From positions 62,001 to 126,000 of the forward strand of contig NIVC01002432.1 in NCBI GenBank assembly GCA_002269645.1: a stretch of DNA of 64,000 nucleotides. Direction: 5' to 3'. The notes beneath the pieces were generated by a model. That model was not told the origin of the DNA, made no database searches, and saw only the letters and a program-made list of their open reading frames with translations. The DNA comes from Macrostomum lignano. Its lineage: Eukaryota. Both the position numbers and the translations under genes were made by a program. Shown here in pieces: positions 4,280 through 23,200 of the stretch; within the stretch, counting starts at the first letter, position 1, and every line of letters starts with the position of its first letter.

Positions 4280-5509
4280 TCAGTCGATGACTGTCTCGGT
4301 CACGCGCGTCTCCATCATGGCTGTGGTCTCGCCCAGGGCGCAGCTGCTGGCGCCGAAGGTGGCGCCGCCGCCTCCACCGCCGGGCAGCAGCGGCAGCGGC
4401 TCGTAGCTGTTGGTCGGCCGTCCCGAGCCGCCGCCGGCATCGGCATCAGCAATTTCGCCTCCGTCAGCGCCGTTTCCACCGCCGGTGCCTCCGCCGTCTC
4501 CGCATCCGCCCAGACAGCCGGCCGGCAGGTGCTGGGCCAAGATGGCGCGCATGGAGGCGCGGAACGGTTCGTTGAGAAAGGCGTACAGGATGGGATTTCC
4601 GGCGCTGTTGACGTAGGCAAGCAGGGTGGTGAGGTGGCTGGCCACGGGCACCCAGCTCGGCGTCATGTCTTCGAGCTCCAGAGCGATGTTGACGTAGATC
4701 CAGTGTGGCAAGCAGCAGGCCAGGTAGAATGTGACCACGGCCACAACCAGGATGGTGACCTTCTCGAAGCGCTGCTGCGCCTGGGGCCCGGCGCTGCGAG
4801 CTCGCTTCATCAGCCAGAGCTTGCGCAGGATCAGAAAGTAGAAGGTGCACAGCAGCAGCCCGGGCAGCACGCAGCCGGTGACGAAGATGTACCTGCTGAA
4901 ATAGTACGGATCGGTGAACAGCTTCTTCAACAGGCCCTCTGAATGATTGACGGAGCCAGGCGGCAGGTGCTGGCAGCTGCGGCTGATCCAAACTCGGTCC
5001 TCCAGAGTCCCATTGTTCTCATGGTCCGCTGTTGCGTTTTCACCCGACGCTGGGATGATCCAAGTCTGGACGTAGGCGTTGAGGTAGATGGGGCTGACGA
5101 TCAGAGCGCTCAGCAGCCACATGCAGACTACAAGGATGACGGCGAATTTCTTGGTGCGGTAGCGGGCCGAGCTGAAAGGCGATACGACGGCCTTGAATCT
5201 GTCGAAGCTCATCGCCATGATGATGTAGATGCTCACGTTGGAGTTGGCGAAGTGCATCAGGAAATACAACTTGCAGCCGATGGTGCCCCAAACCCAGGAT
5301 TTGATGATGGACAGATGGATGAAGGGCGGAATGGATAGAAGATGCAGAGAGTCGGCAATGGCCAGGTTGATCAGGTAAATATTCGTGACGGTGTGGGCCG
5401 CCTTCAGCGAGCAGATCACGACCAGTACCAGCAGGTTGCCGGCGAAGCCGAGGACAAACAGCGCGCCAAGCACGGTGTCGTACACCGCCAGAGCAGCTGG
5501 TAGCAGCAT
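4280..5509 (-). CDS. Class A (rhodopsin-like) GPCR, somatostatin/opioid/allatostatin-C receptor-like, single exon, 409 aa
   Basis: Seven hydrophobic segments. Motifs: GN (TM1), TNIYLINLAIAD (TM2), SFDRF (TM3), W (TM4), CCLP (TM6), NSAGNPILY (TM7). ATG in gccATG context, with an in-frame TGA 11 codons upstream and no AG in between. Confidence 0.93.
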   Translation of the reverse strand: MLLPAALAVYDTVLGALFVLGFAGNLLVLVVICSLKAAHTVTNIYLINLAIADSLHLLSIPPFIHLSIIKSWVWGTIGCKLYFLMHFANSNVSIYIIMAMSFDRFKAVVSPFSSARYRTKKFAVILVVCMWLLSALIVSPIYLNAYVQTWIIPASGENATADHENNGTLEDRVWISRSCQHLPPGSVNHSEGLLKKLFTDPYYFSRYIFVTGCVLPGLLLCTFYFLILRKLWLMKRARSAGPQAQQRFEKVTILVVAVVTFYLACCLPHWIYVNIALELEDMTPSWVPVASHLTTLLAYVNSAGNPILYAFLNEPFRASMRAILAQHLPAGCLGGCGDGGGTGGGNGADGGEIADADAGGGSGRPTNSYEPLPLLPGGGGGGATFGASSCALGETTAMMETRVTETVID

Positions 5510-6307
5510 GGCCCCGGATGCAGCCGGATTGAGAGAGTATCAGCCAGCACAGAGACCCGTCAGAATGCGCTTGGCCCCTACCTTGTGAGTCACGTGCGCG
5601 CACTTCAGCTTATAAGCGAGTTGTCCAAGTCTATAATTGGCCCAGACAGACCTTGGCCCAAGGGAAGCGAGGCTATTGGGGGGGGGGGGCAGGCTTGATC
5701 CGCTTACGAACCAACTGCAATCAGAGTGCCTTTTCAACTAGCAAACTCACAGGTAAATATTGCCTGTATCTGCAGAGGCAAATATATCGAGCGATGGCGT
5801 CTCATATGTCTCGCATCTATATTTATCTGCACCAGCTGCATCTCATTGCAATGCGGATGGCCTATTCTATTATCCATGGTATCGTGCTCAATCACGTGAC
5901 TGCTTGCGACCCCGTCTCGGCTGGCTCGGCCTCAACTATGTCGCTATATGCGTATATAATTGCAGCGATTATGAATGGCAGACTGCTGCTGTCTATTGTC
6001 TGTCTCACTTAATCGATTTTCCGTTAGCCTATTCTTAACCGCCTACAAAAATAACTGAACAGCAATTTAATCAACTATTGAACGATACTTTACTTTTGGC
6101 TTCTAATAAAAGGTGGAGAATTGCCGAAACCTTTAAAATTCCTTTCTGATTTCTTCAAGTCTGCTACTAATATTGAAGGCAGTTCTTCTTAATTACTTAT
6201 CAATTTAATAGGAAAAAATTGTTGAAAAAATGGTCCAGTAGTCATATATGCGTATTGATAAAAAATTGGTTCTCCAGTGTTGATCAAAATTCAATCATAG
6301 TTCGCAT

Positions 6308-9300
6308 TTAAGCGTCCATGTTGTGATAGTCAACGCCAAGCTGTCTGTGACCCTCGGCCAGAATGTCGTGAATGAGCTGGCACTCTGAGTGCGGCAGCAC
6401 TGGACTTTCGATCAGGCCTGCGCGGTTGAATGAGACTTTTATAATTTTTCATCATAACTCAGTTACTCGTACCATTTGTCTTTACTGTACATAAGTCAAA
6501 CTGTACATTTTACAAAAACTGAAACAGGCGAGAAGGAAAAGAGGGTAAGACAGGAGGGGAGATGGAGGAGAGGGTGAGACAGGAGGGGAGAGGGAGGAGA
6601 GGGTGAGACAGGAGGGGAGAGGGAGGAGAGGGTGAGACAGGAGGGGAGAAGTAAGGGAGGGTGAGATAGGAAGGGAGAAGTAAGAGAGGGTGAGATAGGA
6701 AGGGAGAGGGAAGAGAGGTTAAGACAGGAGGGGAGAGGGAGGAGAGGGTGAGACAGGAGGGGAGAGGGAGGAAAGGGTGAGACAGGAGGGCAGAGGGAGG
6801 AGAGGGTGAGACAGGAGGGAAGAGGGAGGAGAGGGTGAGACAGGAGGGGAGAGGGAGGAGAGGGTGAGACATCTAGGAGGGGAGAAGTAAGAGAGGGTGA
6901 GATAGGGAGAGGAAGGAGAGGGTAAGACAGGAGGGAGAGGGAGGAGAGCGTGAGACAGGAGGGCAGAGGGAGGAGAGGGTGAGACAGGCGGGGATAGGGA
7001 GGAGAGGGTAAGACAGGAGGGGAGATGGAGGAGAGGGTGAGACAGGAGGGGAGAGGGAGGAGAGGGTAAGACAGGAGGGGAGAAGGAGGAGAGGGTAAGA
7101 CAGGAAGGGAGAAGGAGGAGAGGGTGAGACAGGAGGGGAGAGGGAGGAGAAGATAAAGGGGAGGACGAGATGCAAGAGATAATTGAAAACCAATTATAAA
7201 ATATAAAATGCGAATTTCCATTTTGAAAAAAAGAGAATCAAACCAGACAAGCAGAAATCAGAGACAGGCCTTTGAGACGCTCAAATTGCTCTATACGTAA
7301 TGAAGGTGTTAATCCGGCACAGACAGAAACCTTACCTGTAATCCATCCGCGTGTCAGCTTAGGGTTGAGCAAAGACAAGTCAAAGGCTGCTGGACAAAGG
7401 CGCGGCTCAAAGGGAGGGGTGGGGCAAGGCCCGAGGGCTGAACTTGAGTCGCTTGGTTAACTGGAGTCCAGCTAGCTTTTTTAATAAGCCCCGGTGTGAG
7501 AGAATGACAAGGCTAATCAAGGAAAGCTAGCGCTTGTGCTACTAATTATCTATGCTGTATTGTTAATATTTTTCAACAACCAGCCCTGTCATTTGCATTC
7601 AATGGCTTTGCGAAGGAAAAGCATTTGGAAACAATTAACAGGAGAAACAGAGGAAATTGAAAATTTCATAAAGCCTTAATTTTAGCGTTAAAACCTCTAT
7701 ATGCTACTAGTCTCAGTAGACGAATTAGAAAACGGCTAAAAAATCTGCTGGTACACAGAAATTCAGCTGCATTGCAAACCTTTGTCCAGGCACTCCTTGA
7801 CGTGGTTGGCCTCGTACAGCAGGCCGCCGCTCTCGTCGAAGTTGAACTTCTCGCCTGGGCGAGCCGGCGGCGACGGCGTGTGGATCAGCTCCCCGTTCAG
7901 GGTCAGCTTGGTGGCGCACCAGAAAAGATCCCCCAGCTGCAAGGAGGGTGGGTGCAACAATACGCTCGTAACAACAACAATAAAATACGCATGTAAGATC
8001 TTAATTCTCTAAGTTGGACTTCGAATGGAATGAAGAATACGGGAATCTGTCTTCTGATATTTCCGGAACGGAAACTACTAACAGTAGTGTAAAAGAAAAT
8101 TGCATTACACGCAAAACTATGCCTTTACTACATATTTTATAAGCTTTAGCTGTCTTAGTGTTATCCTACTTAACCCTATGCAACATATGCTATACAATGC
8201 TACTTTAGAAAACTATAAAAATTAAATTAGGCTTGTATATGCAGCCTTGAGTCATGACTATGAAACTAGCCAAGCTTGCATCATCTAAAAAATGATCATT
8301 TTAAGTGCAGCGGATCCAGAGATATGAGTATGAAAAGTTTAGCTGCAATGCGAACAAGCGGGCCCTCAAATTTTGCGTCCTACGAGTATAATACAACGGA
8401 AATTTCAAGTGGTAATTTTGGAGCGCTGCGCACTCTCACTAAACTACTGTTAGAGTAGTATAGGCCACATTGACTGATTTCGATTTAAAGGTGTAAATAA
8501 TATGGATAATTCTCACGTTAGCGCTGCCCTTGTCGCCAAGCACAGTCGCCGTGGCGGACGGGCCGGCATCGGAGCTGTACGTCAGAGAGGCCAGGCGGTT
8601 GTTGGAATATCTGCGTGCGAATTCAAAATTAGATCATTTAATTAAATTGCTGATTAACTATAGTTTCGATGATTGTTTAACGAAGCCAGGTGAAAATGGG
8701 TCATTTTCGAAGCGCTGAAATTGCCTTAGAGCCATAAATTAAAGCAACCGAATGAAACTTGGCCTACTTTAGAATGATTCCGCCACTCCGGTCTACTCCA
8801 GTTTCATTAACGTGGCCGGCCACCGTCACGGACAGCGGCTTCTCCCCGCCGTACACCCAGCTGGCCAGGTGCACCAGGTACACGCCGAAGTCGCACAGGG
8901 CTCCGCCACCATGTCGTTTGTCGTTGAGGCGAGCAAAATTCGACAACGGCATGCAGAAGTTGGCCTGCACGAGTCGCACGGTGCCCAACTCGCCGTTCGT
9001 CACGGCCTGACGCAGACGCGAGTAGGCGGGAAAGAAGCGGCTCCACAGAGCCACCATGAGGAAGCGGCCGGTGGACTTGGCCAGCGCCAGCAGCTCGGCT
9101 GTCTGCTCTGGCAGCTGAGTCAGCGGCTTCTCGCACAGCACGTGCTTGCCGGACTGGAGGAAGTGGCGCGCATGCTGATAGTGCAAATTGGTCAGGCTGC
9201 CGACGTACACCACGTCTGCGGAATTCGGGCGACAGTAAAATGGATTGGTACTACGTGTGCTATAACATCGATTAAGCCCGTTTAAACATCATTTAGACCG

Positions 9301-10491
9301 TAGGTTTGATGCTATGTCAGCCTCTTCAACGCTTTCTCATTGCACTTTGTGATTCATTAATTAATCCAACCCGTCATGGCAACGCAGTTTGGTTTAAATT
9401 TTCTTTTGTTTGCAGCAACCGATTCTGATCATCTCTGTTTCGTTTTAAAGCTGAATTAATTCTCCACGACTCAATTGATTTCATACATGTAGCTCATGCA
9501 ATACAAGAGTTTTATTCTAAAAAAATTAAAAACAGATAAATTCATAACGTGTCCATTTCTGCAACGAGATTAAGCTACCGTCCTCCCACGTAAACAGGTA
9601 CGGGAAAGAAAGGTAAAGGTTTTGCATATCTCTGTCAAGTTTATAGCTCACGACGTTTGCAAACGTATTTTCTACGAAGACTTTAGCTGCAGATAAAGTG
9701 CTGAGACAGTATTGGAAAGGTCAAGCAGAGGCCGTGGTCAGTTGTTCAACAACAAATTACTGATAAGCTCCGATAGCAGTTGACTGTTTTGAGGCCCGCA
9801 GGCAGAACAAGAGCACAATTACGAGCAGCAGCTAGAAGCACCAGTCCTTAATTGAGTCGCCTCACCGATAAGAAGTTAACCAAAATTTGTTCATGAATTC
9901 CCTTTAAACAACCCAAGAGAATTTCTTCATAGATCTGCGTGCAAAATCTACATGTAGATCAGTGTTTAAGCAAGATATCTTTCCAAGCAATATGCAAATC
10001 AGGGGTTGGCAAACATTTTATCTTAAGAGCCAGATCGAGAACCCAGCGCATGACTGGCGGGCCAGAGGAGGGGAGAGAGAGAAGAGAGAAGGAAGAGAAA
10101 AGGCAGGGGAGAGAAGGGAGAGGAGATTAGAGAGAAAAGAGTTGAGAAGAGACAGAAACCTTGAGCGGGCCGGATTGCAATTGTGAAGTTTCAAAGGACC
10201 CGAGGGCCGGATAGAGAGGCTTAGCGGGTCGAAGTTTGCCGACCGCTGATGTAAGCGATGCAAAATATGACACAATATGAATGACGCACCGACTTCTTTG
10301 CAGGAGCCGAGAGCTTCGCACGAGTCCAGCACGATTTTGATGCCGAATCGGGCAGCGAATTCTTTCGCCTTATCCGGATTCCGAGCTCCAATGGCGACAA
10401 TGGTGTGATTCTCCGGACTCAGGCTCAGTGCGTTGGCAAAATCCTGCGAGATCATGCCATTGGCGCAGATGCCCCAGCGCAGAGGTGCCAT
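6308..10491 (-). CDS. DHDH: Dihydrodiol dehydrogenase / D-xylose 1-dehydrogenase (Gfo/Idh/MocA family), copy 1, 5 exons, 336 aa
   Basis: Exons 10290-10491, 8768-9215, 8517-8610, 7780-7936, 6308-6417. All introns GT-AG and phase-compatible (1011 nt). Motifs: LRWGI..G.IS.DF, HVLCEKP, GGALCDFGVY, FNFDESGGLLYEA.HV.ECL.KGL.ESP. Confidence 0.92.
6520..7152. repeat. AG-rich ~29-bp minisatellite in DHDH copy 1 intron 4
   Basis: Repeating gggtgagacaggaggggagagggaggaga with variants. Confidence 0.92.
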
Positions 10492-11734
10492 GCTGAATTG
10501 CGGTCGAAAAGAAATTAGAATGGATCCCACTTATATTAAAATTATTCACTACAAATAGTTTGACAGTTACATGTACACATCTAATAATTAAGTATGATTA
10601 AGCCGGTATGCTTTGAATAGTACAGTGCAATTCTATATCATACAAAATGCGTTAAATAAAACAGACGATACCTTTCTTAGCTATTTGACTGGTATGAAAG
10701 AAAAAGCTGGAAATTAACTCTTAAAGTAACTGTGAGTATTGACATACACACGCTTTGAATAAAAATTTAGATAGCTTTTGCTGAATGAAATTCAATTTCT
10801 ATCATTAATATAATACCACTTTTTTCATTTCACATGGCTTTAGTTTAAATTTTTAGTACATAGGATATAAACATCGATATTAAAGAGTGTAAGTACGCCA
10901 TAAGTTTAGGACAGAAAAAATCCTAGAAAGATGTGAATATATTTGTTATTAGTAAGCCAAAATACAAATCTTACCTTTGTGTCGAACGGTGTTATTAATT
11001 TAGTAAGTAGAAATTTCAAGTTATTTAACGAATTGTCCAATTGGCTTTATAAATTGGAAAATAAAAGTATTATGAAGCGGATGAAGACCAGGCAGCCCAC
11101 GATCATTTATATTAAAATTAAAATACAATTACGTTCACAAGACTATTTTTATCCATCCAGTGCACTATAAACAAATATTTATTAAGAAATTTTAATTTCA
11201 ATTTCGCTTATTTTATGCATAAAATAAAAAGATGACTTTTCCGTTTTGTTTTTCTCTTCCTCCGGGTTTTTGCATAGCGTCACTAAATAACTTCGACTAC
11301 TTGCCTTTCATGACTATTATACGCTCGTACGTCTTCCATTTTAATTCATGGCCACTGCTGTATTCCAAATAAACTGCTATATGTCTATTATACAGCTAAT
11401 ACCCTTTCATACTTTATTTATGACCAATTACATATTTTATTTGAGCAATCTTGGACCGTACAGAGTTACTTACTGGCGGCGGCAATGTAAGTACCATATC
11501 TTGCCATAATGCTTGTGCATTTTTTGCTATATAGCGAGTGCTTCGCAAAGAATTCTATACTAATTTACTGCATAACAGTATACCGAACTCCTCTTACCAA
11601 GTCACAATGAGGCTCAACAGAAGACATTGGAGAGCAATGATTTCGCATGACTTCAAAAGTGCTATTCGTGGACAGCTTCGAAGAGTCACATCACAAGCTC
11701 AAAAAATCACATCGTCGAAAAGTTTGCAACCACC

Positions 11735-11982
11735 TGTTGTGTATTGCAAAGGCATGCAATGCGTAGGGATAGTTCGGGGACAGGGTTTCTAGAAACTTCC
11801 ACCGCGGACTTGTTTACGCATAGTTCCAGAAGTTTCCTTTCCCGGTCTTTCTAGAACTTTCCTTCCCCGCGTGCATAAATATACGAGCCGCCCTCCTATT
11901 GGCCAAGCCTTCTTTTGGTGCCACTGAGCGCCCGGATAATTATCTATCTTGTTTCTGCGTTCGTTAATTCAACAACAGAACA
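11735..11982 (+). repeat. 5' LTR (248 bp)
   Basis: Starts tgttgtgtattgc and ends caacagaaca. By eye it differs from the 3' LTR only at ggtgcc vs gggcgcc. Confidence 0.97.
11786..11883 (+). promoter_or_regulatory. Three perfect heat-shock elements (TTCnnGAAnnTTC) plus TATA-like box in the 5' LTR
   Basis: ttcTAgaaACttc 11787-11799, ttcCAgaaGTttc 11824-11836, ttcTAgaaCTttc 11849-11861, then cataaatata 11874-11883. The same cluster is at 14208-14282 in the 3' LTR. Confidence 0.75.
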
Positions 11983-11983
11983 T

Positions 11984-11998
11984 TGGCGACGAGGATGG
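11984..11998 (+). promoter_or_regulatory. Primer-binding site, complementary to tRNA-Ser(GCU) 3' end
   Basis: TGGCGACGAGGATGG lies 1 nt after the LTR. It is the reverse complement of ...CCATCCTCGTCGCCA, the metazoan tRNA-Ser(GCU) 3' end as I recall it. Confidence 0.75.
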
Positions 11999-13050
11999 CG
12001 GCTAGCATCCCTGCACCCACGCCCTTCCTGGCGAACTGCGGATCACCGACAGTACCATGGAGCCGATGGATTGAGGCCTTTGAATTTTATTACGAGGCGG
12101 CCCAATTCAAGGAGCCCGAAGGGAAGGAAGAGGCGAAACCGCTGAAGAAGAGCCTTCTGCTCCATCTGCTTGGATTCGAAGGTCAGCGGGTTGCTCGAGC
12201 ACGCCAAGCAATCAAGGAGAACGACACGTTCGCAGCAACTAAGGCGGAGCTCGAGAAGATCTTCGGCGAGAAGCCCAACGTGATGGTGGCCAGATATCGC
12301 TTCCGCCAGCGCCAGCAGCTACCCGGCGAGGACGTCAAGACCTTCGTGGCAGCCCTGAGGGAGCTGACGGAGCTGTGCAACTACGGCGCGATACAGGACG
12401 ATCTCATCAGAGACCAGCTGGCTGAGAAGACCAGTAACCCCAGAATCCGAGAGAGGCTGCTGACGGAGAAGGTGGAGGACCTCAACCTGGCGAAAGCACT
12501 CAGCATCGCGGTCTCCATCGAGGAAGCCTCCAAAGAAGCCAAGGCGATGGCGCCATCAACCTCGAGCACGGCTGCCGTCCAATCGATCCGACAGCCGAGG
12601 GGCCAGAAGGTCGCTGCAAAAGGGAGGCACCGCCCAGCACCAGCTGGCAGGACAGCCAAACCCGGCGGCGCCTGCACACGCTGTGGGCGAGACCACGGAC
12701 CGACGACCCCCTGTCCGGCCAAGGGCAAGACATGCGACGCCTGTGGCAGGAAGAACCACTTCCGGAGTTGCTGTCTCAGCAAGCAGGCTGCTGTCAATGC
12801 CGCGGACGAGGTGATCACAGTCTACGCAGTGCCAGGTGACGACAGGGAGGTCCGGGCGACGCTGGAACTCGGACCGGACAAGACCGCTGTCAGCCTGATG
12901 GTGGACTGCGGCGCAAGGGTGTCGCTGCTGTCCCGACAGACCGCCGACCGGATCTCAGGTGCAGTCACCTCTCCCTCTACGACGAAGCTGCGTGCCGACG
13001 GCGGACTGCCGATCCAGCTAAGTGGTGTCACCGAGCTGGAGGTGCGCTAA
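11995..13050 (+). CDS. Retrotransposon Gag plus N-terminal part of the aspartic protease
   Basis: Open frame MAASIPAPTPFL...WSRWIEAFE.... Knuckles CTRCGRDHGPTTPC and CDACGRKNHFRSC. Protease motif LMVDCGARVSLL. Ends at an in-frame TAA (13048-13050) inside the protease. Confidence 0.88.
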   Translation: MAASIPAPTPFLANCGSPTVPWSRWIEAFEFYYEAAQFKEPEGKEEAKPLKKSLLLHLLGFEGQRVARARQAIKENDTFAATKAELEKIFGEKPNVMVARYRFRQRQQLPGEDVKTFVAALRELTELCNYGAIQDDLIRDQLAEKTSNPRIRERLLTEKVEDLNLAKALSIAVSIEEASKEAKAMAPSTSSTAAVQSIRQPRGQKVAAKGRHRPAPAGRTAKPGGACTRCGRDHGPTTPCPAKGKTCDACGRKNHFRSCCLSKQAAVNAADEVITVYAVPGDDREVRATLELGPDKTAVSLMVDCGARVSLLSRQTADRISGAVTSPSTTKLRADGGLPIQLSGVTELEVR

Positions 13051-14116
13051 GGCGACAAGGCGATGCAGCACCGGTTCTTCGTTGCGCCAGGCGGCGACAA
13101 CATCGTCGGTAGAGACCTGATGGAGAAGCTGGGTTTCCGAGTCGACCTTAGCGGGCAGCCACCCGGAATCGCGAAATTCAGCGACCTGACGGCGGACTTG
13201 CAGGCGCGGTACCCAACGACCGTCAGCGGTGCGATAGGATGCTGCGCCGGCGCTGTACACCAGCCCAAGGTTGACCCAGCAGTGCGACCCGTCCAGCAGC
13301 CACTCTGTCGCCTGCCCCTCATGCGACAGGAGCAGGTCGATGCCGAACTCGACAAGATGGAGAAGGACGGCATCATCGAGCGAGTTCTCGGACTTCCTGG
13401 CCGAGCAGGGCATCCGGCACGTCAAGACCAGCCTCTACCATCCGCAGACCAACGGCCAGACGGAGCGTCTCAATCGGTCGCTGCTCGCCAGCATCAGAGC
13501 GGCCATGGTGGAGAACAGGCCGTTTCAAGACGCCGTGACCAACTTCTTGTCTGCCTACCGGAGCTCCAAGCACAGCCTGACGGGCAAGTCACCGGCCGAG
13601 CTCATGCTGGGTCGGAAGTGGCGCACCGCGATCACCATGCTGTCTCCCGGAGGGGGAATAACAACGACCGAGGCGACGCCTTAGGCACTGCGGCAGCAAA
13701 TCGAGGCGCGGCAGCAGCAGATCAAGGCCTACACCGATGCCAGACGAAGGGCCCGCCCCGAGACGTTCCACCCCGGCGAGTGGGTGAGAATCCGACGGCC
13801 CACCAAGAAGGGCAAGCTGGGTACCCGCCTCTCACAGCCACTCCAAGTGCTCCGCCAGGCGGGACACCACGCGTTCGAGCTCAGCGACGGCACCAGGTGG
13901 AACCAGCAGCGGCCGACCCGAACGCCGCACCCGGCGCAGCCGAGAGAGCGGTTCGACCCACTGGTGGACTCGGCGCCAACGACCGGAGCCGGCACGGCGG
14001 CACCGGCGGCACCGGCGGCGGAGCCTCCGGCAAGAACAGCAGCGCCCCGCCGATCTGAGCGAGCCAGGCACCCGCCGATACGCTACATGAACTGCCGCTG
14101 GGACCGATCAAAGTGA
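13051..14116 (+). pseudogene. Disrupted pol: protease end, RT start, deletion, integrase C-terminus
   Basis: IVGRDLM and AELDKMEKDGIIERV are fused at 13381-13386 to EFSDFL...YHPQTNGQTERLNRSL in another frame. Nonsense TAG at 13682-13684. Ends with a GPY/F-like region and RRSERARHPPIRY. Confidence 0.88.
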
Positions 14117-14140
14117 AGCTTGGGGACTGTTGGACTCCTT

Positions 14141-14155
14141 GAAGGAGGGGAAGAA
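14141..14155 (+). promoter_or_regulatory. Polypurine tract
   Basis: gaaggaggggaagaa immediately before the 3' LTR TG. Confidence 0.9.
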
Positions 14156-14404
14156 TGTTGTGTATTGCAAAGGCATGCAATGCGTAGGGATAGTTCGGGG
14201 ACAGGGTTTCTAGAAACTTCCACCGCGGACTTGTTTACGCATAGTTCCAGAAGTTTCCTTTCCCGGTCTTTCTAGAACTTTCCTTCCCCGCGTGCATAAA
14301 TATACGAGCCGCCCTCCTATTGGCCAAGCCTTCTTTTGGGCGCCACTGAGCGCCCGGATAATTATCTATCTTGTTTCTGCGTTCGTTAATTCAACAACAG
14401 AACA
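14156..14404 (+). repeat. 3' LTR (249 bp)
   Basis: Near-identical copy of 11735-11982, followed by TSD CCACC. Confidence 0.97.
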
Positions 14405-14600
14405 CCACCATCACAAGCTTGAAAAGGGTTAGGGTTAGAGCTTGTGATACGCTTGTAGTGGTTGCTAAAATTTTCGACAATGTCACTTTTCGAGGTTTTA
14501 GCTCGTAATGGTGGCCGCTAAATCAGTTTTCGACGATGTGACTTTTCGAGCTTGTGATAGTGCCCTATTTCGACGATGTGATTTTTCGAGCTTATGATGG
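14405..14600. repeat. Foldback/MITE-like inverted repeat interrupted by the LTR element (left arm starts ~11688)
   Basis: The left flank catcacaagctc...tcacatcgtcgaaaagtttgcaaccacc is the reverse complement of right-side units gcttgtagtggttgctaaaattttcgacaatgtcac and ttttcgacgatgtgatttttcgagctt. The loop contains gggttagggttag. Confidence 0.7.
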
Positions 14601-14619
14601 CGACCCGCCGAATTCCAAC

Positions 14620-15170
14620 GCGGGAGGAAGTCTCCTGGAACATAAGGTGCGCTCCAGTCGACCCACGCCCGCAACCATTGAGAATTTTGCTACCATGTGA
14701 GCTATGATTGAGGATGATGCCGGAGTTATACCGGTTGTACAGATAGAGTCTGCGCTAGGCATTATATCAGAAGGAATCCGAACGATTCTGCAGTCGAAGC
14801 TTTATCTGAGCAAGATTTCGGCTCACTGGGTACCCTATCAGCTGACCGAGGAGCAAAAACAGGCTGGGGTGACGTAGTGGATTCGATGCCAATCGATGGT
14901 GATCGCTCCAACTCGATCTGGGAAGTGGTCAGTAGCCGGAGTACTCGTACTGGGTCTACAGTTCCGACCCATTTAGCCACGGTGCCACTTGTGCAGCAGC
15001 GCAGTTGCTGGGGAGTAGTGCGTGGTACAAACTATTGCATTTCTACCACGAATGCTGAGCGCTCCCTTTCCTTGAGCTTCGTCCAAGAACTCGGAACTCG
15101 TGGCGTCCTCCATCACGAGTCTCAAGACGATTCCCCGGTTCACAAGTTCAGACTTTGAGGCTCGTCCACG
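14620..15170 (+). mobile_element. Degraded Tc1/mariner transposase remnant
   Basis: Reads ...AMIEDD...QIESALGI..GIRTILQSKLYLSKISAHWVPYQLTEEQKQ (WVPHEL linker), later YWVYSSDP (cf. TWVY.YDP) and VLHHESQDDSPVH (cf. LHDNA.PH). Contains stops and frameshifts. Confidence 0.75.
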
Positions 15171-15768
15171 CCATTCAGCAGACTATGGTCACATGGTGAG
15201 TGAGTGAGGCGCAGCCGCCACAAGAAATACTTTCAAAATTTTGATCGTGAGCACGAAATCGTGTTATGTCCAGAACGAAAACGATTACAACCCTAAACAG
15301 CATTGCATTCAGGACACGAAGAAGCAGTGGCTATTAAATACGGTCGTCACCTCAAAGAAAAAAGATGATAAACACCACAGGCAAAGACCATTATAATAAA
15401 AGGCCATAAATAAAGACTAAGGAAACTTGAAAAAGCACACACTAGGACCAAGTAATGCAGACGAAGGAATAATCGTTGTCAATTGAACTTTTAATCAGAC
15501 GCTGCACTGAAACACGAAAATAAACAATAGAGATAAAACTGAACAGTATATTTTTTATAATGAAAAAGTTTCATCTACATGTCTAACTGAATCGTAGCTA
15601 TTGTTAAAAAGTTGATGATGATTATGGACTAACTTAGGTATAAAACTAACATTTACTCAATCGAGACGCAATCAAAAGCCACAGGTTTTATTTATTTACT
15701 GGATTTAATCAAGGCAAAGTTTCGCACAAAATTAGTCAATTGAAGATTGTAACATTTAAAACAGTGAT

Positions 15769-18700
15769 TTAAGCGTCCAAATTGTGATAGTCCACACCTA
15801 GTTGCTTGTGGCCCTCTGCCAGAATGTCGTGGATCAGTTGGCACTCCTTGTGCGACAATAGCGGACTTTCTGTTAGGCCTGCGTGTGCATCAGAAATATG
15901 CGCAAATTTAGGCCTAAATCCACATTAGTAAAACAACAATTAAAAAGCGCTAAAACGCGTCTAAACTTCCCGCCAAAATTTTAACTTTTCTTTTAGGCCG
16001 AGTGCGTATTAAATTGCAAAAACGTGCTTCTCACTGGGTGCAGATCTGTCGCCAGAACTTATGATAGTGCCCTCAAAACCATTTTGCAATCTAATGACAA
16101 ACTTATCAATAGGATCGCTTACCCTTTTCCAGGCACTCTTTGACATGGTTAGCCTCGTACAGAAGGCCACCGCTTTCAAAGAAGTTGAACTTGTCGCCCT
16201 GACGAACCGGCGGTGTCGGCATGTGTATCAGCTCTCCGTTAAGAGTCAGCTTGGTGGGACACCAGAAATAGTCTTCCAGCTGTAGTAAAAGCAAGGACAA
16301 GATTGAAGTTTTTGCACTATTTTGCAGAAAGCAAAATCCGACTGAATGAAGGTACCTCTTCTGAGGCCTTGACTAGCCTAAGCATAGAGTTATTGAGATA
16401 TTAAAGAATATGCTTAATATACAGTATTCGAGGAGAATGGTTACCTTAGCGCTGCCTTTGTCACCAAGCACAAGGGCAGTGGTGGCTGGTCCACTGTCTC
16501 CACTCCAGGTCAGAGAGGCAAGACGGTTGTCGGAGTATCTACAACCAAGTTTAAATATAATAAAGATATAATAAAACAGCTTATCAAGACACTAACAAAC
16601 ATGAGCAGGTTTGGTGAAAACTTTAATAGTTTCCTGATACGTGTCCATAACTAGTATTAGCATATTACAATTAACCTACTTAATAATAATACCGCCGCTC
16701 CGGTCTACTCCAGTTTCATTAACGTGGCCGGCCACCGTCACGGACAGCGGCTTCTCCCCGCCGTACACCCAGCTGGCCAGGTGCACCAGGTACACGCCGA
16801 AGTCGCAAAGCGTCCCACCGCCAAGTTTTTTCTCTTTAAGGCGCACAACCTCGGGTACCGGCAAGCAGAAGTTGGCCTGCACGAGTCGCACGGTGCCCAA
16901 CTCGCCGTTCGTCACGGCCTGACGCAGACGCGAGTAGGCGGGAAAGAAGCGGCTCCACAGAGCCACCATGAGGAAGCGGCCGGTGGACTTGGCCAGCGCC
17001 AGCAGCTCGGCTGTCTGCTCTGGCAGCAGAGTCAGCGGCTTCTCGCACAGCACGTGCTTGCCAGACTTGAGAAAGTGGCGCGCATGCTCGAAGTGCATGT
17101 AGGTCAGACTACCGATGTAAACCACATCTGCAAAATGAGGTGACCGATTAAATGCTTTGTTTGAATTGGTTTACGCCAAAGATTGAATAATTGAATAATA
17201 ATGTGGTTTGATGAAACTTGAACGCTCAAGCCAACACCTGCGTGCGTAATGTGCATTCGAAAGTGCTAGCCAAGGACCTGTTTTTTATTTCTTACTACTT
17301 ATATCAGCTGCCTCAAACGTGAACTGTAAAGTAGAAATTGCCCAAATCACGCAGGTTCTAAGAACTACTAACATAAATAAGAGTGTATTATGATTGTTAA
17401 ATGCAAACGCAGAGGGTGCTGATTTTTTACATTTTATGATATTATTTCAGGAAAAGTAGTTACTACAACGAAAACAATAAATACAACTTTTAGTGACTAA
17501 AGATTTAATAATAGATTTTTGTTGACCTTTGTAGAGACTAAAGATTTTCGGGTACTAAACTGCAGTCGCGTTCTCGTTGCGGTTCCACCCTGCCGCTGCC
17601 TGGCGAAAGCGGCAGCGAGGGTCGGCCTCAAACTGAAGTCTTCACTATGCCGCTGGACCTACCTACCGAGATGCTGCCAGGGATGAGAGACCCAGCTTAT
17701 GCGCTGCCGGCATTTCGTGTGTACCTCGGCGGACTCGCACCGGACATCGCCAGTGACATAAAAAGGAGACGCGGGCTCGGCTCTGGAGCCCGGCTCTGGA
17801 TGACGGGATAAGCTATTTCGAGCAGTCGTCGAGACTGTTCTGCTCTACAACCTTGACGCCGAACCCTGGACACTGACGGATGCCCTGAAAAAAACAGCTG
17901 GACGCCGCGCACCCTGAGATGCTGCATTCTGCGTTCGACGTGCGCTGCGGCCCGGGCTCGAAGTCCAACGCCGAGCTCTACGCTAGGGCTCGCCTAACGC
18001 GGCCTTCTGACCTGCTGCGCGAGAGGAAGCGACTCAAGTTGGGGCTGGCCACGTCATCCACTTGCAGAGTCGCTGCCGCGAGCCGTTAGGTCTACACGAC
18101 CTGTTGTTTTGGACGGCGCAGGGTCCGACGCGCTACTCTGAGTTGCTTCTGAGGGATGCAAGAGCCCTCGTTCTGACTCTGACTGGGGGAACTGACTTTG
18201 AGAAGTGGCCGAGAGTGTGGCTGGCGAGAGGTGTATTTTGTTTTTGTTGTTGTTGTCTCTATCTTCTTGAGTCATAAGGTAAATACTCTATCCTCTGAAG
18301 TAGGATTTTTTAAATTTGAAACTTTATTAAATATTTCCTTTTCAAATTTATCACGGGGAGCTCTATAAAAGTTTAAACTGCGCTTAAACATGAAGTGAAC
18401 TTCACTTTTTACCCGCACATGGCACTTTGGGCAGGTCCTGTTCTTGTAAGGGATTTTTGGTCTCACAGTGCTCATTGTTTAGCATGCCAGTTCATGGTTG
18501 GCTAATATAAACTGTGTCAGGGTGCGATTAGACTTCGGTCCCAGGATCCCAGGTTCCAGGAAACGAAAGCCCCCAGGCCTCAGAAACGTAGAGGCAAATT
18601 AATCTGACTCTGAAAAACTCTACTCGTTTACGCTGTTTTTATTAAGTATCAACTCGGTTAAATTACATACTAGTAGCCACAGTTACGAGTTATCGGCTCA

Positions 18701-20276
18701 TATTGCTGTAAATAATAAACAATCTCTGGCCCGTCGTGCTCCGTTCCAGTTCTTTATCGCATAAGACGCCCGATTTCGGCCAGTTTAATCTGCCTGACCG
18801 TGACTGTCACTGTACTAGGGGGTAAGGCCTATATATTTACCGTGTCACACAGTCCGATCGTTTGGCGTGATAGCTCCGCGCGACTCAGTAGGCGCGCCTG
18901 CTTCTCAGGGGTTGCTTTCACAAATGTTAAATTCACAATTAGTACCCAGCTCAGAGAGAAACACAACACGAGAACAATGGAGAGGAACAACGGCCTCCAC
19001 ACGAACTTGAACGAGGGCTGTCCCAAAGGTAGTTATATTAAAAACCAAATAACATCATTTTGCACAGATTTATAGCGGCAACTCTCTTCTTTATATTATC
19101 TTTAACATCATTTAAAACAGACAATGAAAACTAAATTTATAAACTAAAATGTAGCAGGACCTCGACCATAGACTTACAGTAAGTCAACAAGTTAACAAAA
19201 TTTCGAAGTGGTAGCTCACAAACGGGTAACTGGCTGCAGTAAATGCTGCAAAATGACTGCGGTGAATGACTGCTAAGACCCATGAGCCAATGAAAGTTGA
19301 GCATGAATCTCGGCTCAACTGTGCCCCATCCCCTAAAGGGTGTATATCACACTCCTCTGAGCAACACTTGAATGAACATCCAAGACTTAAGTGCAGCAAA
19401 AGGTGGGAACAAAAAGCAATAAAGCTGAAATATTCTGTTGCTTTAAAAGCTATATGCTTCTCCAAGTTTTCCATAGATATTTTCTTTTCTTTTGTTTTTC
19501 ACAGCAGCCTAAAAAATAAGTCTGAGTGCATTCAATCAAAAGTACTTTCACTACTTTCGGCTAGCTTGTCGAATTACTGTAAGTCTACGGTCGAGGTCCT
19601 GCTACATTTTAGTTTATAACTTTTGTTTCCATTAAAGGGAACGCAAGAGCCAATGCTCAAATCAAGGCATAAAAATTCTCAGCAGGCGGAGGGGGAGGGC
19701 CGCTGCACACAAGAGGGTAAGAAAGGACACAACGCAACCCCGCTAAGCCCCCGCGAATGCACAGCACAAAAATGCAAAGCCAGACCCCTCCAGGGTACAA
19801 AAACTGGTTTTCAAGTTTCACAAGTTTTTGCACTCTATAGCTTTTAAACCACCCCTCCTAAACAGCAGCATGTGTTTCATTGGCTGTCCACTACAATTGC
19901 TGTAGTTCCTCGCCAGGCTTCATTCATTGCATTTTTTATACAGAAAGCCCAATTGACTTATGTTGTACTCCCAGACTACCAAAACCATTTCACCGCTAGC
20001 AAAAGATGCAGAAGAAAACGAGATCAACAATTAGCAGCTAGAGGGGACTAATCAAAACTAAATAAGCAGCTCACCAACATCAGTGCATGAACCAAGGGCT
20101 TCGCAGGAGTCCAGCACAGTTTTGATTCCAAATCGTGCAGCAAATTCTTTTGCCTTGTTTGGATCGCGAGCACCAATAGCAGCAATTGTATGATTTTCTG
20201 GACTCAAGCTAAGTGCATTTGCAAAGTCCTGTGAAATCAAGCCCGTGGCACAGATGCCCCAATGCAAAGGTGCCAT
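15769..20276 (-). CDS. DHDH: Dihydrodiol dehydrogenase, copy 2, 5 exons, 336 aa
   Basis: Exons 20075-20276, 16680-17127, 16445-16538, 16123-16279, 15769-15878. Exon lengths (202/448/94/157/110) and phases are identical to copy 1. All introns GT-AG, no stops. Confidence 0.92.
17560..18256 (+). mobile_element. 5'-truncated, decayed RTE-clade LINE in DHDH copy 2 intron 1
   Basis: Frameshifted peptides LAKAAARVGLKL, F.VYLGG, KLFRAVVETVLLYN, WTLTDAL..QLDAAH, SNAELYARARLTRPSDLLRER. Ends in a short (TGT)n tail. Confidence 0.8.
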
Positions 20277-23200
20277 GTTTAACTTGAGTGCATGAAGTTG
20301 AAATTAGAAGCTAAATTAATATTGCCATCAAACTAAGTAACAAGATTTATATGCAGGTCAAGTGACAATACAATTATTTGCTTAATATGAAAGGGGCACA
20401 GACAAGCTCTAAGGGCCAGGTTAGTTTTGCTTTATAGAGATTAAATTGCAATTTAAATTTAATATGAAAATAAAATCAAGAAAAACAATAAGAGCAACAT
20501 AGTATATGTCAAATAAGAAATCAGCAGTCCTAATTTTTTTATAATAGTAATAATCATATATATTAAAGTGATTTTCTTCCATAGGACTAGTATGTTCTTT
20601 ACTAATAAAGATTAAGGTACCAATATTTTAGATTTGATAAAAAAATTGACAGGTAAAGAGTTGCAGTCACTAATTTGCCTAATATAGTTAAGGTAATAAG
20701 ATTATATTAGCTAATTAAGCTTTCATTGCATACAATCATAGCACTTAATTTCAAGGGCCTATACGATTATATAAGTTAAGCATAAATATATTCCCTAAGA
20801 TAGTAAAAGAAATGATAGTCATAAAGGCAATTGGCTTCTTTATCATTTGAAATAGGTAAACTTATAAGCAAGACTATAAATAAAGTTTATAATGAACAAA
20901 TTCTAGACTGACTTTTAAATTACTACCTGATGCAACCAAAGTAACAAATAAAAAAATTATCTCTTGCCTTGTAACAATGCACTAATCTAATGTTGCTATG
21001 TCTGTTTTGGCAGTTTGCCATTGCTAATTAATAGTAGAGGCCTAGAAGATGATATATAACTAGGTGCATAGCTGAGATTCATATTAGGAAAGGGGACAAA
21101 GACAAATCCATTTCCAATGGAAGCAATAGAAGCAAAATACAAAGGCAAAAAAATTGCTTTCTAGGGAGACATGTCCCAAGTGCCCCCCCTCCTTTGGCTA
21201 TATCTTAACCCATAGGCCCAACCAAAATCTATAAAATAGATATGGCCTTGGCTTCCTAAGTGTGCACTCCTGCTTAGACTTAAATTTATAGTCTAGACTC
21301 CATTTGTAGTCTATTCTAATCCTTGAAATCATATTTGTTATTTGTGCTAAAGGTACAAGAACAAAAAGAGAACAACCAAGTAGAGCCTAGCATTTTTTAT
21401 TATAATATAAGTCCTTTAAGGCTCCTAGAGTAAAATAGCTTAGATCCATTTACTAGACCAAAGTACTAAGAAGAATAGCTAGAGACCAAGAAAGGTCTTA
21501 CAGATAACCAAAAAATTATTAGCTTGTACTATATCAAACATTAAATAATAATTTAATTAGGATTATTAGAATAATATATAGGCATAACATAGGCATAGGC
21601 ATAGCCTCATACTCTCATAGCATAGGCCTAAAATAAATAACTTTGATTCATCATAATATAGGCCTACAATTTAAAAAAACTTCCATATATTCAACCTTAT
21701 ATTAGGTTAGTTTAAAGTTAAAAAAATATATATAAAAATATAAAAAATATAAATTATATATATTTTGATACAAGATATTCTACAAGATAGCAAAAAAATA
21801 AATGTTAGGCCTATTAAACATCTAGTTTGACTAAAGTATAAAAAATATTTATTAAAAAACTATCTAATTCTCTTTTTAGGCCCTATAAAACTTCAAATAT
21901 AGTGAAACTAGACTCATTTAAAAATAAATAAACTTAAACTGAAGGAAGATAAAATAGAACCTTAAAGAATTTACATTAAAATTAAGTTTTATTTTATTGC
22001 AAGCTTTACCTTTATTCTTATCTATTAGGCCTATCATTTTCATTGCAGCAAAATATTTACTTTTGTAAATTTGTCAACCAAGTTGAGGTTGGCTGACATA
22101 ATAGGCCTAGGACAGGTCCGGTCAGTCTAGCGATCTACACCACTGTCCACACACACATTTATTTCTATTTAATAGTATTATATTACTATATGATTAGATA
22201 GTAGAATCCCTGGTAGGCCAGTGCGCTTGATTTTTCAAAAAATCAAATGGTTTTGAAGAGTTTTCAAGGTAGAATACCGGGTTTCACCCTATCCTATGCT
22301 AGGCCTACCTAATGCATGTGGAGTGGACCATGCGCTGGTCCAGACCCGGCCCATTGGCCATTGGTGCGCCATTGCTACATGGAGGACAGCTAGTAGTAGT
22401 GTTTGTGTTTTGTTTGAGACGTTTTACAAAAAGGTCAATTTGCTTATTTTTTCTCAAGTTTGCTTTAGTAAATAAAAGTTTAGCTGTTTTCATTTTTTAC
22501 CTTGATTTTTCAAATTAGTAATTTATTTGTTAATTTAGACACACCTTATCACCTGGAACAAATTTAAAATTTTACCCTGTGGGCCAATTAAACTTAATAC
22601 GTACTGATCGAGCTGCTTCTCTCATTGCGTCGCGTGTACTGCTGTGTTGGTTCGTGGCGGCTCCTATCTGTGTATGCGCACGTGTTTCTGAGCTCGTATC
22701 TGAACTATGTGGAAGATTAAAAAAATAGGCTGATCGTGTCCATGGTTCATGGAATCAAATGGTACTATTTCTATATTTTGATGCAAGTTTGTCTTCAGAC
22801 TCTAGTTACTATTTTTTAAGTGCTCATTGGTTTTTTAAAGCTTAGTAGTCGTAGACTTGTCGATTACGAAAGTTAGGCCTACCCATTCGAGTATTTGAAA
22901 TTGAGGGTCATAATTACATTACATTAATGAGTTTTGCTGTTTTGTTAGGGCCTATGACAGTCTGTTAAACCTAGCTACTGCAAAATGTTCTACTAAGCTT
23001 ATATTTTGAATTATCTTAATCTTGTAAGCTACACCAACATGTGCGCAAAACCGCCTGAGTTACAGTGGCCATGCGACTTACTTTTAGGCAAACAATTGCT
23101 TACCTATAAGAGAAACCTAAGCAAAAATTAATATTTTGAGTAAATGGCAAAGTTAGGGGGCCTACTTTGACTGTATTATTAAGACTAAACGCCTCATCAT

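Follow-up and report, generated by a model that had tools for sequence, protein, structure and literature searches.

The window analysed here is a stretch of 64,000 nucleotides (nt) of the Macrostomum lignano genome (assembly GCA_002269645.1, contig NIVC01002432.1, positions 62,001 to 126,000), in which two DHDH-type oxidoreductase genes from the Gfo/Idh/MocA family stand on the minus strand as a head-to-tail tandem, with copy 2 (c2) upstream of copy 1 (c1). Exon 2 of these anciently diverged genes carries two tracts of complete or near-complete identity, separated by a highly divergent 57-nt island that encodes a loop at the active site, and comparison of the sequences securely assigns the tracts to ectopic (interlocus) gene conversion. 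We consider it likely that this was one conversion episode with a discontinuous tract, most probably from c1 to c2, which took place shortly before the subgenomes of this species split.

The converted zone and its age

Exons were located by tblastn with exon peptides, their flanks were read, and GT-AG models were then assembled. Each gene has five exons, canonical GT-AG introns and an intact coding sequence (CDS) of 1011 nt for 336 residues. The c1 gene occupies 6308..10491 on the minus strand (exons 10491-10290, 9215-8768, 8610-8517, 7936-7780 and 6417-6308; NCBI locus family BOX15_Mlig032638), and the c2 gene 15769..20276 on the same strand (exons 20276-20075, 17127-16680, 16538-16445, 16279-16123 and 15878-15769; NCBI locus family BOX15_Mlig012888). 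The c2 translation equals PAA57926.1 exactly, and the closest database protein is BOX15_Mlig012888g1 of M. lignano. Pfam families PF01408 (E 3e-26), PF22725 (E 8e-21) and PF02894 all exceed their cut-offs in both copies, and the Pfam matches together with an AlphaFold2 (AF2) model give the Gfo/Idh/MocA architecture of an N-terminal Rossmann NAD(P)-binding domain followed by a C-terminal alpha/beta domain. Both copies have E96-K97-P98, with the catalytic Lys, and D176 and Y180 of the GG.L.D.G.Y motif; the catalytic Lys, Asp and Tyr are sites 1-3 of the family (PMC11612644). The best match in the PDB is monkey DHDH, 2o48 (E 1e-72), with which the numbering is collinear, the next family member there having an E value of 1e-24, and the named homologues are trans-1,2-dihydrobenzene-1,2-diol dehydrogenases. 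By domains, motifs and best match, therefore, the two proteins are members of the DHDH subfamily, with a predicted oxidoreductase activity on dihydrodiols, D-xylose or dicarbonyls. Outside M. lignano, no homologue more than 45% identical to the pair was found in the collections searched, and an exact-protein look-up in other assemblies returned no record.

The two genes were compared base by base at an offset of 7912 nt. Tract A, at 8786-8895 in c1 (minus strand, CDS 523-632, codons 175-210, with D176 and Y180 inside), does not differ from c2 16698-16807 at any of its 110 nt. Tract B, at 8953-9150 in c1 (minus strand, CDS 268-465, codons 90-155, containing the EKP motif with K97 and also W125), differs from c2 16865-17062 at one nt in 198, namely 9116 (T vs A, Gln/Leu101, CDS 302). 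Between them lies the island (minus strand, CDS 466-522, codons 156-174), at 8896-8952 in c1, where it reads MPLSNFARLNDKRHGGGAL, and at 16808-16864 in c2, where it reads LPVPEVVRLKEKKLGGGTL; here 22 of 57 nt differ (39% mismatches) and no identical run is longer than 5 nt. The whole 365-nt zone is contained within exon 2, with 308 nt in the tracts and 57 nt spared. Of the 1011 nt of CDS, 165 are unlike in the two copies, and 164 of these differences fall in the 703 nt outside the tracts.

Outside the tracts the copies have diverged extensively. Exon-2 flanks differ at 21-28% and the other exons at 19-28% of positions, identical runs reach 16 nt at most, and blastn of the two gene regions aligns the five exons only. 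Excluding tracts and island, synonymous divergence (dS) by the Nei-Gojobori method is 1.35 and the ratio of non-synonymous to synonymous divergence (dN/dS) is 0.08. The duplication is evidently old, given this dS and introns that cannot be aligned. Inside the tracts, on the other hand, 0 of 102 third positions differ, compared with 97 of 215 (45%) outside (Fisher 7e-21), and it is this identity of synonymous sites that identifies the tracts as products of ectopic conversion. At the background rate, 110 identical nt would occur by chance with a probability of 2e-13, at most one difference in 198 nt with 9e-22, and 102 identical third positions with 3e-27; the longest identical run, of 163 nt, compares with a maximum of 81 nt when the difference positions were shuffled 100,000 times. 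An earlier note on this DNA, made from the letters alone, had given the coordinates of tracts and island and the difference counts of the tracts exactly as above and had quoted peptides that prove to be residues 156-175 of the two proteins; its reading of the remaining exons, the start of exon 2 and the introns as diverged, of the duplication as old and of the identical tracts as ectopic conversion is borne out by the same figures. No other segment of low divergence was found in the CDS of the pair, nor was there any gradient of divergence beside the tract edges that might be the trace of older conversions, divergence being 21.5% and 27.8% right at the edges. With identical runs of no more than 16 nt outside the tracts, conversion between c1 and c2 should be rare.

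The direction of the transfer can be approached through base composition. The GC content of third codon positions (GC3) ranges between exons from 0.65 to 0.90 in c1 and from 0.36 to 0.68 in c2, and in the tracts it is 0.83-0.88. Log-likelihood ratios in favour of a c1 origin of the tracts amount to 20.6 nats for third-position composition and 19.0 nats for codon usage, and the per-codon score of the tracts (0.20) is near that of the GC-rich exons of c1 (0.23-0.26), any c2 segment scoring 0.06 or less. As the composition of the tracts is c1-like, c1 was probably the donor and c2 the recipient, a direction taken from base composition alone. Tract A of c2 (16698..16807) and tract B of c2 (16865..17062) would thus probably be c1-derived, and c2 would be a chimera that retains its original sequence in the island.

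A six-frame search of the 764-Mb genome of 5269 contigs found the tandem pair on three contigs, that of the window (C2432), C995 and C1700, and nowhere else, and the 365-nt zone has exactly six matches in the whole genome. The three loci align collinearly at 96.5-97.7% identity, introns and intergenic DNA included, with ~2.6% of clean alignment columns variable. In the Mlig_3_7 assembly, 70-85% of the sequence is present in three paralogous copies, termed subgenomes, that followed a recent genome multiplication, and the single-nucleotide polymorphism (SNP) rate is 2.2% overall and 1.1% in CDS (PMC10733133). The three DHDH loci match these three subgenomes.

None of the six CDS is disrupted, and each of the three pairs shows the two tracts and the island with identical edges. 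Differences among the three c1 copies amount to 1-3 sites, those among the three c2 copies to 5-11. Fixed differences between c1 and c2 number 0 in the 308 tract nt, 22 in the island and 137 elsewhere; at 9116 the c1 copies are themselves polymorphic, the one on C1700 carrying the c2 base. After the event the tracts acquired five variants in total, at CDS 295, 302, 349, 390 and 536; tract A holds one of them and tract B the other four. All but the one at CDS 295, which is common to two c2 copies, are confined to a single copy. The variant densities of the two tracts are indistinguishable from each other and similar to that of the rest of the CDS, which fits tracts of the same age. Identical edges in three subgenome copies imply that the mosaic predates their divergence and that no edge has moved since. 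On this comparison the mosaic was in place before the three subgenomes, now ~2% diverged, separated, and only shortly before, because the tracts had accumulated zero fixed differences by then. The suggestion of the earlier note that the paralogues are being homogenised by recent conversion does not agree with a single 365-nt zone that has the same edges in all three subgenome copies and predates their ~2% divergence: there is one visible conversion episode in the whole history of the pair rather than a continuing homogenisation.

Two further features of the subgenome copies were observed. From kilobase to kilobase over window positions 5450-21100, the odd one out among the copies on C2432, C995 and C1700 shifts, a pattern suggestive of subgenomes that have recombined or exchanged sequence and do not follow one tree throughout. 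In addition, the c2 copy of C1700 has two private non-synonymous changes within the tracts, G117S (CDS 349) and V179A (CDS 536), the latter adjoining the catalytic Tyr180, which may mean that constraint on this c2 copy, one of three, has been relaxed.

The spared island and the active site

The island has a dS of 1.44, a dN of 0.38 (3.6x background) and a dN/dS of 0.26. Since this dS is that of the background, the island was never converted. At the protein level, 11 of its 19 residues differ between the copies, compared with 40 of 215 elsewhere (Fisher 4e-4), which makes it the most divergent 19-residue window of the protein, the next window having 7 differences. The possibility that the island is merely an intrinsically variable loop was considered and is only partly true: with logistic control for the variability of family alignment columns (column entropy), 3.9 differences would be expected where 11 are observed (P ~2e-4). 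According to the same regression, conversion erased ~17 expected residue differences in the flanks.

Two other origins of the island were rejected. Conversion of the whole zone with rapid re-divergence of the island would have to account for 9.5 synonymous differences (dS 1.44) in the island and none in the flanks. Had either island been donated by a third DHDH paralogue, such a gene would have to exist, and protein and DNA searches of the 764-Mb genome returned six genes only.

Comparison with 50 outgroup sequences suggests which of the two loops has changed. At conserved island positions c2 has the consensus residues V161 (56% of outgroups), L169 (80%) and T173 (50%), whereas F161, R168 and H169 of c1 occur in 0 of 50. 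The loop of c1 (8896..8952) is consequently, as judged from these sequences, the derived one, and the native c2 loop (16808..16864) keeps the consensus.

The alignment to 2o48 is gap-free across the island, and H79, K97, W125, F154, D176 and Y180 are conserved, so numbered that island residues 156-174 start just past F154 and end just before D176. In an AF2 model built from 52 sequences (predicted local distance difference test score, pLDDT, 96.5; template-modelling score, TM, 0.95 and root-mean-square deviation 1.2 A against 2o48), the island is found between the strand 147-155 and the catalytic helix 173-188, which bears D176 and Y180, and it consists of the loop after the strand, helical turns at 162-165 and 167-169, a GGG turn and the first two residues of the helix. 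The location thus draws on the secondary structure, on collinearity with 2o48 and on the distance in residues to sites described in the family. Arg163, within the island, is kept in both copies and in 92% of the 50 outgroup DHDHs, and lies 13 residues before the catalytic Asp. The "site 4" Arg of the family contacts the cofactor and is Arg172 in CcAAOR, with Asp185, and Arg178 in PlIDH, with Asp191 (PMC11612644); by this spacing, Arg163 would be the active-site "site 4" Arg of the DHDH pair. The L-arabinose dehydrogenase AbADH binds its sugar through Glu147, Trp152, His153, Asp169 and Asn173, among others (PMC9795676), and these contacts map by their spacing to the Asp onto DHDH positions 154, 159, 160, 176 and 180. 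The segment had been expected to lie near the substrate pocket, with a position far from the active site as the result that would tell against this; collinearity with 2o48, the loop of the AF2 model immediately before the D176/Y180 helix and the spacing to the CcAAOR, PlIDH and AbADH sites all support a position beside the pocket.

The annotation of c1 is irregular at this same place. The NCBI c1 proteins PAA57925.1, PAA73743.1 and PAA64925.1 (320 residues) omit S159-L174, that is 16 residues or 48 nt (window 8896-8943), a stretch that holds Arg163 and the GGG turn and is encoded in frame by each of the three genomic c1 copies. The 3' edge of the omitted segment coincides exactly with the boundary between island and tract A. 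A canonical intron was rejected as its cause, as GT..AG is obtained in no register, and the skip is probably an annotation or transcript-assembly artefact of the identical flanks. Its source is suspected to be either a transcript contig with the loop of the other copy (a collapsed bubble) or a jump of reverse transcriptase across a local hairpin, and in either case 48 nt would be left unaligned and then called an intron. More generally, transcript assembly and annotation are probably misled where a divergent core stands between flanks that are identical.

Explanations for the discontinuous tract

Under the explanation that we favour, an old duplication would have given rise to the tandem DHDH paralogues, both under strong purifying selection, and a single episode would later have acted across the 365-nt zone of exon 2, most probably from c1 into c2. 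The tract would have been discontinuous, with 308 nt overwritten and a central patch of 57 nt keeping the recipient sequence. This patch may have been spared because a heteroduplex with 39% mismatches underwent restoration repair or was rejected, or because repair synthesis switched template back to a c2 allele. Restoration repair and template switching are established sources of patchy tracts, and the island would be the least stable part of the heteroduplex and the likeliest to be restored.

Several points weigh against this explanation. In model organisms, only a minority of conversions leave discontinuous tracts. The composition from which the direction is read is that of genes in which GC3 varies between exons, and the next homologue is only 45% identical, so that neither the sequence before conversion nor the direction or absolute date of the event is directly observed. 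The three contigs come from one assembly and are hence not fully independent witnesses. Finally, selection would likewise be expected to leave a fixed tract in which precisely the active-site loop that is most differentiated was spared.

That last point leads to the main rival, in which conversion has been recurrent and events carrying the loop were purged by purifying selection because the loop sets specificity, leaving an island of divergence maintained by selection; we regard this as possible, though less probable than a discontinuous tract. The island does coincide with an active-site loop in which Arg163 lies, positions 159-160 match Trp152/His153 of AbADH and the adjoining F154 matches Glu147. 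The excess of 11 residue differences over the 3.9 expected is in keeping with it, as are H169 and F161 of c1 at positions where 80% of outgroups have Leu and 56% have Val, c2 having the consensus. Both genes are also intact in three subgenomes with a dN/dS of 0.08, which suggests non-redundant functions. Recurrence itself is, however, unseen, as there is one converted zone, saturated dS elsewhere and the same edges in three lineages ~2% diverged. The dN/dS of the island is 0.26, not >1; at 8 of the 11 differing positions the family varies in any case; 40 further residue differences also separate the two proteins; and a barrier set by mismatch density predicts the same coincidence. The data cannot separate a discontinuous tract from selection, because under both the spared patch is expected to be the most divergent and differentiated segment, and a mechanical cause of the sparing is somewhat more likely than selection. 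Were selective protection the cause, c1 would have evolved a new loop (F161, R168 and H169, with S159/N160), c2 would be obliged to keep the ancestral one, and the conversion would have produced a natural chimera, with the substrate specificity of the two enzymes now residing largely in these 19 residues, a scenario that we entertain only tentatively. The tracts could instead stem from two independent conversions, of 110 nt and 198 nt, that chanced to flank the island. The island does separate the tracts cleanly, and the length of each is within the usual range of ectopic conversion, but two events at a distance of 57 nt would be needed, each of them shortly before the subgenomes split, in a pair that shows no further conversion across a dS of 1.35, and the post-event variant densities are alike (1/110 nt vs 4/198 nt). 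We consider this unlikely and rank it third, after the single discontinuous tract and selection.

Explanations that do without conversion fare worse. Mlig_3_7 is highly redundant, with 93% of short-read pairs mapping to multiple places (PMC10733133), and collapse or mis-assignment of reads during assembly or polishing might in principle have made the tracts identical. That redundancy, however, concerns subgenome copies that are ~98% identical, whereas c1 and c2 are ~78% identical outside the tracts, and the same mosaic is present on three separately assembled contigs, each with private SNPs inside the tracts. Two fused UniRef predictions, A0A1I8G589 and A0A1I8GK06, which presumably derive from the older ML2 assembly, also show both loops together with haplotype-specific residues, and an artefact is very improbable. 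More improbable still is extreme purifying selection at the nucleotide level, for example on an overlapping functional element, as the means by which the tracts were preserved. Long antisense open reading frames (ORFs) do overlap the region, though they are expected in GC-rich coding DNA; 308 nt would have had to remain unchanged over a dS of 1.35, the same nucleotides tolerate five variants among six recent copies, and the other exons show nothing comparable.

Comparable mosaics have been described. In Tigriopus californicus the paralogues GOT1p1 and GOT1p2 form a conversion mosaic in which divergent islands are candidate selected sites (Willett 2013, PMC3728101). The DHDH pair likewise has identical or near-identical tracts broken by a short, highly divergent and possibly functional segment, but mosaics of the GOT1p1/GOT1p2 type are mostly homogenised genes with continuing conversion, whereas the DHDH genes are mostly anciently diverged, with a single converted zone and no recurrence seen. 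RHD/RHCE and the primate L/M opsins are further conversion mosaics of paralogues, and divergence islands in duplicates are reportedly treated in the models of Innan and of Teshima and Innan. Discontinuous tracts arising from mismatch repair in heteroduplex or from template switching in synthesis-dependent strand annealing (SDSA) occur in yeast, Drosophila and mammals. As in such patchy tracts, the DHDH zone runs from donor to recipient to donor sequence and the spared patch is the most mismatch-dense part; unlike them, it was not observed as a recombination product in a cross, but is a fixed evolutionary product in three subgenomes. In relation to the mammalian dimeric DHDH (EC 1.3.1.20 / 1.1.1.179; monkey structure PDB 2o48, 2o4u, 2poq, 3ohs), the M. 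lignano proteins share 42% identity and the same residue numbering, but they are lineage-specific tandem duplicates, and the loop of c1 is unusual in its F161, R168 and H169.

A literature search found no paper linking Macrostomum, DHDH and gene conversion. The DHDH mosaic is a real but ordinary case of a known type of gene conversion and reveals no new mechanism. Its value is as a clean and well-bounded discontinuous ectopic conversion between paralogues with a dS of ~1.35 that can be dated against the genome multiplication of M. lignano. It also nominates residues 156-174, chiefly 159-161 and 168-169, as candidate determinants of specificity in an enzyme group whose physiological substrates are poorly defined, and if selective protection is true, it offers a ready-made loop-swap design for DHDH specificity.

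Annotation and neighbouring elements

The two fused UniRef proteins, each of 685 residues, are read-through fusions of c2 followed by c1, joined by a translated intergenic piece that matches a minus-strand ORF at window 15442-15570. They are gene-prediction artefacts.

Between the two DHDH genes, at 11735-14404, is a long terminal repeat (LTR) retroelement of ~2.67 kb, with 248-nt LTRs at 11735-11982 and 14156-14404 that are 99.2% identical; a gag-like ORF encoding zinc knuckles starts at 11968. The C995 and C1700 copies lack the element at the homologous position, and the insertion is therefore younger than the subgenome split. It sits in or beside a short tandem repeat with a period of ~40 nt (~11690-11734 and 14405-14600; 7145-7376 in another subgenome-copy locus), which is seen as serial matches of 31-32 nt in the other subgenome copies.

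Intron 4 of c1 contains, at 6526-7150, a 29-nt tandem array of 21.6 copies with 88% matches that is purine-rich on the plus strand. The three-way comparison of the subgenome copies is least clean near these positions, where megablast pieces overlap and one 1-kb bin has 45 differences found in C995 alone. On the minus strand, the array yields spurious Pro/Ser/Leu-rich ORFs of up to 253 residues.

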